Source: Octopus sinensis (Eukaryota). From it: 64,000 nt of DNA. Location of the stretch: positions 114,080,001-114,144,000 of the forward strand of contig NC_043002.1 of NCBI RefSeq assembly GCF_006345805.1, read 5' to 3'. Below the pieces are notes generated by a model that saw only the letters and a list, made by a program, of their open reading frames with translations, searched no databases and had not been told where the DNA came from. Positions 31,481 through 59,457 of the stretch are shown piece by piece. Both the position numbers and the translations under genes were made by a program. How positions within the stretch are numbered: the stretch's first letter is position 1; each line of letters begins with the position of its first letter.

Positions 31481-32855
31481 TGTTTGCATTGCTTTATAGA
31501 ATTTGAAAGTTATTCGTTTTGTATAAAATTATTATTCGTTTCTCCTTTAATAAATATATATGTGCACAACAAACGTGCCTACACACGTACTGTTTACTTT
31601 GGATGAATAATAAACACATATTCAGTGTTTTTGTATAGGCTTCGGGTGTTTTCTCTGTACAATGTATATATTGGATCTTTTCAGTTTGAAGGCCAGATTT
31701 TCTTAGTTAACTAAACAATTTGAAACTTCGTATACTGGTAGAATGTGTCAAAAGAAAACATAATTGTAAACCAAAATGAAAACGGAATTGTAATTTCTAA
31801 GTTTAACGTTGTTTAAAAATTCGAATTTTAACCAATGATATTCTTTCTTTCGACCTCATATTATTTACTGCTTCTCAAAATATTGTTACTGTGAAGTAAA
31901 CAGCTATTTTGTGACGTAGTTAACGTAAACATGTAAACAGACCTAGAGATTCGTTTGTAACGTAAACATCCGCTCATCGTAAATAGCTAAATTCGCTTGG
32001 CATCGTACACAGCTTTTTCAGTTCCCTAGAATTATATTTCAAAGAAAATAAAAATAAAAAGATTCATACGCATAAATATCCATCCTTAGACATCAGAAAA
32101 TGAGTGTTTAAATTATTTTCCATTGTTTGCATTGCTTACACGCACACACATACATACATACACACATACTAAAATTACATCGTTGGAGCAGTAATTTATT
32201 TATGTATTTTTTGTTATACAATTTATTTTAAAGCTGAATCCCTATCCTGCCATTAACCCCTTTCTTATAAAATAGTTGAAGAATCTGGGGTGTAGGTATT
32301 GGGCCAGTATTGGAACTTTTAACTTCTTGCTTTCTATCTTATGATCTCCGAAATTTAAGAATCTTGTGTTAACTCGGCTCTTATTATTTACTCTCACTCT
32401 GCCACCACCTCAATGCAAAGACTATCAATATCAGAATCATCTTCACAACCACCACTACAACCATTACTACAACCTCGAATGCCACCACCACAACCATCTT
32501 CTGCAACCACAACCCCAAGATCAATACCAGCATCATATTCAAAATCACCAATTTCACCACCACTACACTCTGCAATGTCTTCAACTCTACCATCCATGAG
32601 ACATCCTAACATAATCAATGCTACTACTACTATCATCATCATTATCATCATCATCCACTGCCGCCACCACCACCACCACCACCTCCACAAAAACACCAAC
32701 ACTATAATTTCTGCCATCATACACATCCACTGTCACCACTACACCACCACTGCCATGATAACCACATCTACCACCTCCAACACCATTGCCACCACTATCT
32801 ATGAGACATCCTAAGTTAGAAACTACTTTCACTTTCTAGTTGCTCTTTGAGTTTA

Positions 32856-33351
32856 TCTTTATATATAAAAGAGAGGTTGTGTGTCTGTCTCCTACGATTT
32901 AAATTCCTAACTACTCCCACATTTTGCGGTGCAGTTTAACCAAAACCGGGTATCTTATAGTCGTGATTCATATCGAGCCCTTCTGGGTATTAGCGCGCGT
33001 CTACGATGAGTCTACGATTTAAAAAAAAATTTACCATAATTTTTTTCCATTTTAATGCATTTTTTCGATATTATATAAGGGAAGTAACTCTCTAAAAATG
33101 TCTACGATGAGTCAACGATTAAAAAAAAATTACCATAATTTTTTTCCATTTTTAATGCATTTTTTTTTGCTATTTTTTGGCTATAACTCTCTAAAAATGT
33201 CTACGATGAGTCAACGATTAAAAAAAAATTACCATAATTTTTTTCCATTTTTAATGCATTTTTTTTTGCTATTTTTTGGCTATAACTCTCTAAAAATGCT
33301 CATATAGTTATTTCCCTTACAAACCCGAGCAACGCCGGGCGATACTGCTAG
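32856..33351 (+). mobile_element. Non-autonomous Helitron with an internal ~99-bp tandem triplication
   Basis: TC...CTAG ends; tctacgatgagtc..ctctctaaaaatg unit at 33001, 33101 and 33200. Confidence 0.88.
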
Positions 33352-33859
33352 TTATATCTAATCTATCTCTCTAAAAGATGCAAAGCAAGTAGCATTAAAT
33401 GGTGAATGGATGTGAGCAGAAAGAGAGTAAGTTCCATTCCAGTTTACAACAATTATAGAATTATTCTCAAACCATAAATGAAGGGTGGAGAGGAGTGAAG
33501 GAGGAGTCATGTTTCCTCTGAGGGGTTACAGAAGTAATAAGCACTGAAAAGTGGAGTTTGCGTTATTATTTTTGTTTCATAGTTTACAATTATTTCTACA
33601 AATTCATTTTGACTTATCTTCAATTATGTTTATAAACGTGACCGCTGTGCCGTCCACTATAAACATTGATTAATGTCCTATATTTAAGCGATAGACAAAC
33701 ACTTCAGCATATTATTTTTTGTAGAGAGTTGCGAGGGATCATTTCTATGAACGGGGTATCTGTACAACGGATGACTACATCATTAATTGTGGAGTCGTTT
33801 AAAAACACGATGCAAGATTAAGTCAACATGGAATTTTTGAAACAATCATAAATTGTTCT

Positions 33860-34015
33860 ATATTTTAGAGATGAGGAATTCTGTACAATATTTACATTTT
33901 TTACATTGGACGGATATTTGTCCTCATCTTGTTTGTTGCTACCACAAAATTTCGGCTGATTTACTCTCCAGCCTTCATCAGGTGTCCTGGTAGAATTTTG
34001 AATCCAACCCTAGGT
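33860..34015 (-). mobile_element. Penelope-like terminal repeat remnant
   Basis: Minus strand gacacCTGATGAAggctg..cagccGAAA hammerhead-like core. Confidence 0.55.
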
Positions 34016-55800: not shown

Positions 55801-56312
55801 CTGCATATTACTCCCACTTCCTCTTTACACACATAGACACGCAAATATATAAATAAAATTGTAAGCTAACGTGTGTGTGTGTGTGTGTGTGCGTGTGTGT
55901 GAGTGTGTGTGTGTGTGTCTGTGTGTGTGTGTGTGTGCGTGTGTGTGAGTGTGTGACAGGGATGAGCAAGTCAAACTGGTGATCCTTTTTGCTAGATCAC
56001 CTAACATCTAAAGTTATCTCTAAGTAGCAGTCGCCCAAAAGTGTATATAGACACACACATGTATGTATAATGTGTGTGTATATATTTCCATAGAGGTAAC
56101 CATTCACTCCATACAAAGTTATTTAGGACGAATTGGACGAATATAAGATCTAAAGTATATCTAAGTAGCAGAAAGATCGCCCAAAAGTGTATATAGATAT
56201 TTAAATGTATTTATATATTCATCTATACACACATGTATGTATAATATGTGTGTATATATTTCCATAGAGGTAACCATTGACTCCGCACAAAGTTTTTTAG
56301 GACGGACGAAAA

Positions 56313-57156
56313 TCTTTATATATAAAAGAAAGGTTGTGTGTTTGTCTACTCCGATTTAGATTCCTAACTACTCCCACATTTCGCGATGCAGTTTAACCAA
56401 AACCAGGTATCTTATAGTCGTGATTCATATCGAGCCCTTCTGGGTATTAGCGCGCGTCTATGATGAGTCTACGATTTTAAAAATAATTTACCATCATTTT
56501 TTTCCATTTTAATGCATATTTTTTTAAATAAAGGGAAGTAACACTCAAACTTCACACCAATATGCGTGCTCATATGCGACGTAATATCACATCAGCAGCA
56601 TTTCCTCACACCCTCCTTGCACTTGGCGAAGGCAAAATACCAGGGTGTGAAAATGGTAATATTGCCATCGATTCCATTTGTACCATTGTTAAGACGCCTC
56701 CTGATCTCAGAGATGCAGTGTTCCCAGATCTACAAGCTAATTATCAGAATATGGATTGGATTGGCAAAAAGGCTATACTGGCCCCGAGGAATAAAACTGT
56801 TCACCATATTAATGATGAAATGCTAAAACTCATTCCTGGGGAAGTCTATGTATATCAGTCTATCGATACAACTCCTGACCCAGAGGACGTCATCAACTAT
56901 CCAATAGAGGTACTCAATTCCTTTGAGCACCCCGGACTACCACCACACTTTCTCAAACTTAAAGTTGGTGCCCCTATAATGCTCATCAGAATTTGGTTCC
57001 CCCAAACAATGCAAGGCACACGTTTGATCGTTAAGTCCTTATCTCCCACCGTAAACTTATATCAATATTTGCCTGAATAATCATCATAATTCAGTGCAAT
57101 CATTAACAGTACTTTCAAGCAATTCAGCCCCGAGCAACGCCGGGCAATTCTGCTAG
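56313..57156 (+). mobile_element. Helitron deletion derivative retaining a helicase fragment
   Basis: Same termini as the short family; internal PIF1-like ORF. Confidence 0.88.
56562..57080 (+). pseudogene. Helitron PIF1-type helicase fragment
   Basis: KAILAPRNKTVHHIN, YPIEVLNS..GLPPHFLKLKVGAPIML, GTRLIV. Confidence 0.9.
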
Positions 57157-59457
57157 TACATATATATATATATATATATATATATATATATGTTAATAAA
57201 ATAGAACATATGCATATATATAAACATATATGTACGTACCTACCTCTACATGTACATATACACGCATATATGTGTACAGGACACCAAAAAGACGTCGAAC
57301 ACATAGAGAGACGAAAAACTTAGACACAAACCAAGGAACAAGACAAGCAAAAAAAGAGATACAGGACAATAAGCACAACGAAAAATCCCCTTCTTCAGTC
57401 GCTAAGGTTTCATCTACTAAACGTTTCGAAGGATAAAAGCGAGACGTATACTTCGAAGAAAACTTCCTTCCTGCGAAAAGCAAATCAATTAAAATTCTGA
57501 GATCTTTTCGCAGAGGGGTAAAAAAAGCAAGACGGTAACGACAGTACAAACATATAAACAGTAAAAATATATATATAAACAGTGGAAAAATAAATATATA
57601 ACAGTGGGAGACAGGACAAGGAGAACAAGATAAGAAGGGCTGTTAACGCCAGACGAAAAAAGTATTGCAAACGCTGGATTATAGTGGACGACGAGAGAGA
57701 AAGAATGTCGACCAGTAGCCTTAGAAGGCGGGCGAGAAAAGACAGGATAGCAGTTACGACGGAAGTATCGTCGCAGATGGACGACGGGAATGGGGGAGGA
57801 GGAGCAAGAGGAAGATATATATATATATAAATATATAAATATATAAGGCTGAAGTTGTCTGGATATATGTATGTGTGTGTGTGTGTGTGTGAGTGTGTGT
57901 GTGTACTTATGTATGTGTAGAGACCTCTTTTGGCTCCACCTGAGTTTTGAAACTGAATGGGTAAATTTCCCCCTAACTATAGAGCCTTATTGTTCTGTTG
58001 AGGAACAATGTTGTTTTATTCAACCGATGGCCTTCCCAACATTTGATTGATGTATTTTCCTCTTGACCCATAACCCTTCTAGTTTGTAAAGGGTTTAAAT
58101 AAATAATATAAGCGATCTTTACCCTTTCAACGGCAGATCGAGAAATATATTTTTTGTAACTAAACACTTTCAACCTTCGGACACTAACCCTAACCCTAAT
58201 GTGTCATATAAAACATATTTTACTTTTAATGTTACTCTTGACCGCGGCCATGCTGGAGCATCGCCTTTAATCGAGCAACTCGACCCCGGGACTTATTCTT
58301 TTTGTAAGCCCAGTACTTATTCTATCCTTAACCAATTGTATTGTCTGTTTTCATTTGAAATTATTAGCTGCATAGTGTTAATGTGACGTAGATAGCTATT
58401 TTGTGAGTGGGTAAGCAGTAAGCAAACAGCTGTGGTAGATGTCGTTATCATGGCAGTGGTGGTAGTGGTGACAGTGGATGTGTATGATGGCAGCAAGTAT
58501 AGTGTTGGTGTTTTTGTAGAGGTGGTGGTGGTGGCGGCGGCAGTGGATGATGATGATAATGATGATGATAGTAGTAGTAGCATTGATTATGTTAGGATGG
58601 TAGTGTTGGTGTGTGTGTGTGTGTGTGTGTGGGTGTATGTATGGATCAAAACAGTTTGATTCAAATTCTGTGGTTCTTATATATTCATACATACATATAC
58701 ATGTAGATGTATATAACATATATATTGTATGTAAACATCTTTTATATATATATATATATATATATATATATATATATATATATATATATATAATGTATGC
58801 ATCTATAATACACACACATTATAAATATATACACATATATGCATATGCATTAGAATATGTGTGTATAGGTGTATATATATATATATATATATATATATAT
58901 ATATATGCATATGTTTGCATACATGTGTGTGTAGCTATTTAGGATCTACACAAATTTTATATATACTCCACGAAGTTTATGATAAGCGGAGATGTTTACA
59001 TTTTAGTTAGCTATTTACATGTTTACGTTAACTACGTCACAAAAGAGTTGTTTACGTCACAGTAACAATATTTTGAGAAGCAGTAAATAATATGAGGTCG
59101 AAAGAAAGAATATCATTGGTTAAAATTCGAATTTTTAAACAACGTTAAACTTAGAAATTACAATTCCGTTTTCATTTTGGTTTACAATTATGTTTTCTTT
59201 TGACACATTCTACCAGTATACGAAGTTTCAAATTGTTTAGTTAACTAAGAAAATCTGGCTTTCAAAAAGAAAAGATCCGTATATATTTACTATAAACTTG
59301 TGCACACGCTTTGATTCTTCAGTTTGACACACGCCTTGAACCGGTTATTTGGCTTGTATGCACCCACATACACACACACATACATACGCATACTCGCTCA
59401 TAATCAGGGCCCCTCTGCGTTTTCGCTCGTCGATGTGCTAGGAATAACACCCAAATC

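Follow-up and report, generated by a model that had tools for sequence, protein, structure and literature searches.

An old miniature transposon in Octopus sinensis probably inflated in place to 27.6 kb, with arms apparently homogenised in part by gene conversion

When two closely matched inverted arms bracket tens of kilobases of DNA, it may be asked whether the whole segment moved as a single giant transposon or whether a small element grew where it stood. The question is raised here by a stretch of 64,000 nucleotides from Octopus sinensis (RefSeq assembly GCF_006345805.1, contig NC_043002.1, positions 114,080,001 to 114,144,000 of the forward strand; hereafter the window, with coordinates counted from its first letter), in which the terminal inverted repeats (TIRs) of a MITE (miniature inverted-repeat transposable element) bound a span of 27.6 kb. 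A sequence-only reading of the window had offered two alternatives: a giant cargo unit moved whole, or a MITE swollen by nested insertions, the arms of which conversion had made alike. The first of these finds no positive support, and the second matches the evidence: on the sequence, an old MITE was probably inflated in place and its arms partly homogenised by a recent conversion tract (probability roughly 0.6).

The ends of the structure, with L and R denoting its left and right arms, are as follows.

31664..31672, no strand: left copy of the target-site duplication (TSD), gtatatatt, directly adjoining the L terminus GGATC; the 9-mer is rare in the window
31673..31940, + strand: left TIR (L arm), terminus GGATCTTTTC, 97.4% identical to the reverse complement of 59011-59278
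39954..40053, no strand: assembly gap, a run of 100 N inside the span
59011..59278, - strand: right TIR (R arm), an inverted copy of the L arm
59279..59287, no strand: right copy of the TSD, gtatatatt, directly adjoining the R terminus

The arms differ at 7 of 268 positions (97.4% identity, E about 1e-131), or at 6 over 265 bp (97.7%), which agrees with the earlier estimate of about 6 in 265, and the L arm matches the nhmmer profile of its family with E=1.8e-65. The sequence-only reading had also described variants private to this pair and a gtatatatt flank at both ends, and both descriptions hold. L and R have 15 alignment columns in common that differ from all other family copies in the window, and the 9-mer occurs six times on the + strand of the window, both TSD copies included (four others), so that an in-register 9-mer flank match has a chance of about 6e-5. 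Reading the flanks as adjacent 8-mers gives tatatatt and gtatatat, which do not match, and the in-register duplication is 9 bp. The left TSD copy is preceded by ctctgtacaat and the right copy is followed by tactataaacttgtgc, which together give the expected empty-site junction. Because of the private shared variants and the common 9-bp flank, L and R are the two arms of one element and not parts of two; the arms of two other family members, elements A and B (see below), are paired on the same grounds. Pairings of the R terminus at 59278 with the arm at 58113 or the arm at 31160 were ruled out by flanks and identity.

The span crosses the 100-N gap, as the sequence-only reading had cautioned, and its length is therefore nominal. 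Within its own contig the L arm is contiguous with 8.0 kb of non-MITE sequence, and the R arm with 19.0 kb; no second copy of the gap-flanking sequence was found within the window. The TIR and TSD matches across two contigs are independent evidence for a single locus in this order and orientation.

The similarity of the arms is unevenly distributed, and three tracts describe it.

31692..31894, + strand: L arm core, arm positions 20-222, identical to the R core; putative gene-conversion tract
31941..32137, + strand: left inner MITE-derived sequence, with an extra segment of ~134 bp, ending in a block common with the orphan arm at 31160
58945..59010, - strand: right inner MITE-derived sequence, diverged and with indels, in which the shared block is truncated

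The seven differences sit at arm positions 11, 12, 19, 223, 231, 234 and 266, which leaves a core of 203 bp with 0 differences, all 7 falling in the other 65 bp of the arms (10.8%; Fisher P=3.8e-5). Were seven differences scattered at random, an unbroken identical stretch of 203 bp or more would arise with P=2.8e-4, and the divergence of the core lies below 1.5% at 95% confidence. Inward of arm position 268, an eye count gives ~17% mismatch, accompanied by indels of 7 to 12 nt and by the 134-bp extra segment on the left. L and R can still be aligned inward of this position, as far as ~31990 in the left arm and ~58975 in the right one, and a further block, also present in the orphan arm at 31160, runs on to 32137 (left) and 58945 (right), with the 30-mer at 32108-32137 identical to 31465-31494.

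In elements A and B, unlike in L and R, the differences between arms are scattered. The core region varies among family copies, non-partner arms being 61-89% identical, and constraint therefore does not explain the identity of the core. The divergence of the unconverted arm parts resembles that of the old element A (37 differences over 403 positions). Taken as a whole, the pattern points to a recent gene-conversion tract laid over old arms and not to a young element, and non-crossover recombination between the inverted arms would be the simplest cause of the identical tract. Where unconverted, the arms are at least 11% diverged, and hence old.

The family to which these arms belong is represented elsewhere in the window by the following members.

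18988-19692 and 21009-21120, no strand: element A, a near-perfect palindrome of ~809 bp with arms of ~400 bp and 37 differences
19693-21008, no strand: element B, 1316 bp, nested in the right arm of A, with the 8-bp TSD aagccaag
25427-25683, - strand: orphan arm, family member
31160-31494, + strand: orphan arm, family member
58113..58397, + strand: decayed orphan arm of a different subfamily, from alignment (nhmmer E=6.5e-7, with a second collinear piece)
59458-59941, no strand: 484-bp family element with two partner arms

This is a long-TIR, partly foldback, non-autonomous family with termini GGATCTTTTC, comprising in the window, beyond L and R, the two-armed elements A, B and 59458-59941 and three orphan arms. 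As A and B demonstrate, the family inserts into itself. Arm lengths run from about 210 to 400 bp, with GGATC termini on all intact arms, and the partner arms of A and B are 90.8-96.4% identical (37 differences over 403 positions and 8 over 213). The other two-armed copies measure 484, ~809 and 1316 bp, and the other copies in the window carry at most one insertion each. The TSDs are aagccaag (8 bp), cacacatt/cacacatc at the flanks of element A (8 bp, 7/8 matching) and gtatatatt, which at 9 bp departs from the two clear 8-bp TSDs of the family. The decayed arm at 58113-58397 is interrupted by a fragment resembling a short interspersed nuclear element (SINE; 58238-58326) and by a telomere-like insert, and no partner was found for it. 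The family is probably undescribed, and forms a dense local cluster with self-nesting and orphan arms.

Two further observations concern this family. At 30843-30866, immediately after a SINE derived from a tRNA, lies GGATCTTTTCTGTTTGAAGGATCC, a 24-nt mini-copy that joins the ~19 nt of the family's left terminus to GATCC from its right end; such a sequence could have arisen by extreme internal deletion or have been left behind by an excision. Telomere-like (TTAGGG/CCCTAA)n runs are found at interstitial positions, namely at 27153-27245, at ~58186-58205 and, within an arm, at 25427-25470, and two of these runs sit inside arms of the MITE family.

The interior of the 27.6-kb structure is a patchwork of transposable elements (TEs) and repeats, including long interspersed nuclear elements (LINEs).

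32857..33351, + strand: non-autonomous Helitron F2, with three 99-bp tandem units
35528-36129 and 36364-36959, + strand: two 604-bp direct repeats, 98% identical, from self-BLAST
36965..37363 (approximate), - strand: inverted copy of Helitron F2, followed by (TA)n at 37364-37754
40054..42075, + strand: LINE-1, which has a gag-like CCHC open reading frame (ORF) and closes with a LINE 3' tail; the 5' end falls within the gap or on its far side
42076..42099, no strand: left copy of the LINE-2 TSD, 24 bp, acttggatactaaccatgtagtgc, identical to 47015-47038
42100..47014, + strand: LINE-2, a full-length retrotransposon without long terminal repeats, with gag-like, endonuclease, reverse transcriptase and zf-RVT regions in broken frames
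47015..47038, no strand: right copy of the LINE-2 TSD, a perfect 24-bp match
47211..47692, no strand: internally deleted mariner-type element with 36-bp TIRs, 88.9% identical, and TA flanks
48203..49039, - strand: frameshifted mariner transposase fossil (Transposase_1, E=4e-14, and a weak DDE_3 match)
52536..53718, no strand: 1.2-kb (TA)n array, from TRF
53748..56549, + strand: two collinear units of ~1.5 kb with 82-89% identity, both of which close with the 5' end of a Helitron F2
56532..57077, + strand: Helitron helicase fossil with a Pif1_2B domain, from a Pfam match

Pfam scans covered the non-low-complexity interior ORFs of at least 50 aa, apart from those antisense to the LINEs and the repeat at 35.5-37 kb, and all of the domain matches lie in broken frames, which bears out the description of frameshifted mariner and Helitron fossils given previously. 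No intact or cognate transposase was detected among the ORFs so scanned, which lie outside the N gap. The Transposase_1 and DDE_3 matches span 48203-48695 on the - strand, and a small helix-turn-helix fragment matches HTH_32 at 49510-49671. In LINE-1, zf-CCHC is matched within 40878-41300, and the tail at 42030-42075 is homologous to the tail of LINE-2, which sits directly behind it in tandem. LINE-2 retains matches to Exo_endo_phos (43674-44475), RVT_1 (within 45449-45985) and zf-RVT (within 46215-46697); its frames are disrupted on the order of a dozen times in 3 kb, which corresponds in a rough calculation to a few percent of decay. The F2 Helitrons, ~400-500 bp in length, have ends (5' A|TC, 3' CTAG|T with a GC hairpin) common to five copies with different flanks, four inside the structure and one outside it; the F2 5' ends that close the ~1.5-kb units lie at about 54878-55250 and 56313-56549. 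In all, the interior counts four or five Helitrons, and it also has several shorter microsatellites. In a rough tally, ~14-15 kb of the interior is accounted for, and ~12 kb has no recognised TE identity, which means little without a repeat library for the species.

The divergence between paired sequences of the interior provides a relative chronology. The 604-bp repeats differ by 2%, the Helitron copies by 4-11%, the LINE tails by about 10%, the mariner TIRs by 11% and the ~1.5-kb units by 11-18%. Each of these values exceeds the divergence of the core, and, the 18% block apart, none is greater than that seen between the unconverted arms. The interior is thus older than the core and mostly not older than the unconverted arms, as nesting in place after an old insertion would predict, and the conversion therefore appears to have happened after the arms had been separated, when they were already far apart. 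The sequence-only reading had taken the fossils to be older than the TIR divergence. Measured against the unconverted arms (at least 11%) they mostly are not, and the argument that the cargo predates the TIRs fails because the arm differences are clustered, with an identical core lying inside older arms.

The arm pairing, the TSD, the clustered differences and several discrete insertions with end signatures of their own are directly observed. The last include the 24-bp TSD of LINE-2, Helitrons inserted at A|T with TC...CTAG ends, the TA flanks of the mariner element and the SINE fragment within the nested arm. No opposite-facing arm was found inside the left end in profile searches at maximum sensitivity, which argues for one MITE split in its middle and not for two MITEs flanking a cargo; near the right end these searches recovered a single such arm, the decayed + strand one at 58113-58397. 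In what we infer to be the order of events, a long-TIR MITE would have inserted once at gtatatatt, long ago, and its middle would then have grown in place to at least 26.8 kb. This growth would have come from nested insertions, namely the two tandem LINEs, several Helitrons, mariner derivatives, SINE fragments and a copy of the same MITE family, with microsatellite expansion adding length and local duplication possibly contributing as well; the ~12 kb of unlabelled interior would likewise be inserted DNA. More recently, a tract of at least 203 bp would have been copied from arm to arm across the ~27-kb spacer, presumably by conversion, while the unconverted tips and the inner parts of the arms would retain the true and much larger divergence.

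Several points weigh against inflation in place followed by conversion. For an old insertion a perfect 9/9 TSD is somewhat surprising: its probability is about 0.39 if divergence is 10% and 0.23 if it is 15%, as compared with 0.79 at 2.6%. Conversion across 27 kb between arms as short as ~300 bp is no more than plausible at this locus. The 34-fold expansion is extreme relative to the other family copies in the window, but a scan that seeks oddities will meet the extreme tail. The ~12 kb of interior without TE identity could be ordinary genomic DNA. The decayed arm at 58113-58397 resembles half of a two-MITE arrangement, but belongs to the other subfamily and has no matching TSD. Finally, there is no settled explanation for an inner inverted pair of 173 bp, described further below.

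Transposition of the 27.6-kb unit as a whole, whether as an inflated non-autonomous element, a macrotransposon or a composite formed by alternative transposition, would have proceeded by cut-and-paste into gtatatatt, and is considered unlikely. It draws on the canonical insertion signature, in which inverted termini are accompanied by a perfect direct 9-bp duplication that modestly favours a younger insertion, and on an interior that looks like ordinary local genome, decayed same-family arm included. Precedent exists in maize, where Ac/fAc composite insertions of up to 19.3 kb have 8-bp TSDs (PMC4270019), and a candidate inversion footprint, an inverted 8-bp duplication at 31152-31159 / 59450-59457, brackets the same segment. 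Yet the window contains no long interior-exterior duplicate of the kind a donor would leave, the left side has no inner element ends, and L and R are sisters that belong to a single element, not ends drawn from two. The conversion tract is needed under this explanation too, and because the tract already accounts for the low arm divergence, movement en bloc becomes an extra and unneeded rare event. The more specific proposal that Merlin- or Mutator-like (MULE) MITE ends cut and pasted a transposase-less segment of 27.6 kb, in a cluster that may also have made a ~28-kb inversion, is on these sequences distinctly doubtful.

The same inverted 8-mers bear on an improbable alternative, in which rearrangement at the MITE cluster, through reversed-ends transposition or ectopic recombination, moved the arms apart or remodelled the segment. 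Immediately before the termini at 31160 and 59458, which share the + orientation, stand gatttggg and cccaaatc, respectively; these are reverse complements, and cccaaatc is unique in the window. We estimate the chance of such a match at about 2e-3 after ~90 implicit comparisons. This flank pattern is as described for transposon-end-mediated inversions (PMC8225341), and there are several orphan arms in the window, at 31160, 25685 and 58113. However, the ends of the 27.6-kb structure stand in the standard orientation with an identical direct TSD, which an inversion by ectopic recombination would not leave (PMC8225341), and the arms at 31160 and 59458 are just 81-83% identical, with 59458 having its own partner at 59941. 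Assembly artefact, by a wrong joining of contigs at the gap or by placement of foreign contigs between the arms of a short MITE, has a similarly slim, if anything slightly slimmer, chance of being correct. The 100-N gap lies within the span and foldback repeats are hard to assemble, but each arm is contiguous with non-MITE sequence, so that two separate chimeric joins would be needed, and the TSD and arm match between the contigs supports their adjacency. A chance match of AT-rich flanks between two half-elements inserted independently would draw on the local density of the family and on its orphan arms; at a 9-mer frequency of about 6e-5 per position, and with 15 private variants and a 203-bp identical core set against 61-89% identity between unrelated copies, this explanation is effectively refuted.

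The segment between the inverted 8-mers, 31160-59449, contains the entire 27.6-kb structure. Such 8-mers would be expected if a single insertion had later had one of its ends inverted, and they match reversed-ends transposition or an inversion whose breakpoint lies inside a MITE; no model fits cleanly. No version of a reversed-ends or ectopic-recombination model could be built that fits all of the arms from 31160 to 59941.

Inside the arms lies a second inverted pair, which the sequence-only reading had placed correctly as a segment of ~170 bp near both ends.

32602..32774, + strand: left member of the inner inverted pair, set in low-complexity sequence that spans about 32390-32815
58432..58599, - strand: right member, an inverted copy of the left

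The copies are 94.2% identical over 173 bp and are the only two in the window. They could be what is left of foldback arms that were once longer. Beyond this 173-bp pair there are no more collinear inverted matches between the two sides, such as would be expected of a large ancient palindrome. The tract around the left copy is CCA/ATC-rich and ~430 bp long, and a 14-bp direct repeat, ATGAGACATCCTAA, brackets this copy at 32596-32609 and 32801-32814.

As compared with known systems, the structure has much in common with MITEs and long-TIR foldback-like elements: TIRs, a TSD, multiple copies with different flanks, and later TE insertions that bear their own signatures. Among the scanned ORFs of at least 50 aa, the Pfam matches were to LINE, mariner-fossil and Helitron domains. 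The structure differs in its size, 27.6 kb as against 0.5-1.3 kb for the other copies and thus outside the MITE range of hundreds of bp to about 1-2 kb, and in the identical 203-bp core that it has despite the ~27 kb between its arms. The excess over the MITE range would be attributable to nested insertions. Members of the hAT superfamily have 8-bp TSDs and termini of the YARNG type, and were ruled out by the GGATC termini and the 9-bp in-register duplication. Polinton/Maverick elements encode a protein-primed polymerase B, a retroviral-type integrase and capsid, ATPase and protease genes, and have a 6-bp TSD. The size class (15-40 kb) and long TIRs are shared with them, but the TSD here is 9 bp and the interior is a patchwork of unrelated TE fossils; with no polymerase, integrase, ATPase, protease or capsid domains in the scanned ORFs, this class was also ruled out. 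Large palindromes, for example those of sex chromosomes, undergo gene conversion from arm to arm. As in these, the inverted arms here would have been made or kept identical over a long spacer by non-crossover recombination, but the arms are ~300 bp and the pattern points to a single tract and not to sustained homogenisation.

The end features of the family invite comparison with the Merlin superfamily (IS1016/IS1595-related), in which TIRs measure 24-462 bp, the termini have a conserved 5'-GG and TSDs are 8 or 9 bp long (PMC8101967). The TIRs of ~210-400 bp, the GG termini and the TSDs of 8, 8 (7/8 matching) and 9 bp agree with Merlin MITEs, but no DDE_Tnp_IS1595 domain is present among the scanned interior ORFs, and the assignment is one of end features alone. 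MULE elements would fit almost as well as Merlin, and the resemblance of the family to one or the other is best treated as a lead and not as a classification. At 9 bp the TSD lies within the 8 to 9 bp of Merlin, although a duplication of 8 bp extended by one base that matches by chance is also conceivable. With maize, where composite insertions of up to 19.3 kb have transposon termini at both ends and 8-bp TSDs (PMC4270019), and more generally with Ac/Ds composites and macrotransposons (PMC4270019, PMC9910405), the structure shares a length of tens of kilobases, transposon termini, a TSD and no need for an internal transposase. The maize composites, however, derive from two elements, with duplicated donor flanks or whole end elements, and here the ends are sister arms; within the window the termini of two elements, inner ends and donor flanks inside the structure are not found.

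Searches beyond the window returned no second copy of the locus. None of ten ORFs from the flanks, junctions and interior was present in an exact look-up in a collection of 15 billion proteins. The empty site, joined in silico and translated in six frames, had no match in a protein database, in a search conducted at the protein level only. An invariant 18-mer of the family yielded 23 loci in a metagenome scan, all of them chance matches of 18-26 nt. The best named relative of the Helitron helicase fossil is a protein of Octopus bimaculoides, with 69% amino-acid identity, and the fossil is 86.9% identical at the DNA level to a 20.6-kb locus of that species (L001). Other TE families of the window occur in this locus at 82-92% DNA identity, and no copy of the MITE family was found within its 20.6 kb.

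The remaining features of the window are those of an AT-rich (about 37% G+C), repeat-dense region. A (TGTA)n array of 2.7 kb occupies positions 1-2727, and a second, different LINE, with open frames of 272, 141 and 150 aa, lies outside the structure at 10862-12977. A tRNA-like SINE family has a 3' tail (...CCCCTTGTGGGCAGTAAAGAAATA) in common with the LINE tails at 42075 and 47014, and copies of it are found at 4288-4531, 22853-23077, 28256-28345, 30645-30842 and, on the - strand, 3246-3344. No copy of this SINE lies inside the 27.6-kb structure. This SINE and LINE-1/LINE-2 are likely a LINE/SINE partner pair, given their shared tail.

The locus does not demonstrate a giant mobile element, and its history would be unremarkable for a genome rich in TEs. 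Low overall divergence in a matched TIR/TSD pair can be deceptive, and arm identity is not a clock for long-TIR elements because the divergence mixes a converted core with old flanks. Should the 27.6 kb prove to be present or absent as a block, the locus would be a rare natural case in an animal of the mobilisation of a large segment by MITE ends, and would be worth pursuing for a role in the restructuring of cephalopod genomes.

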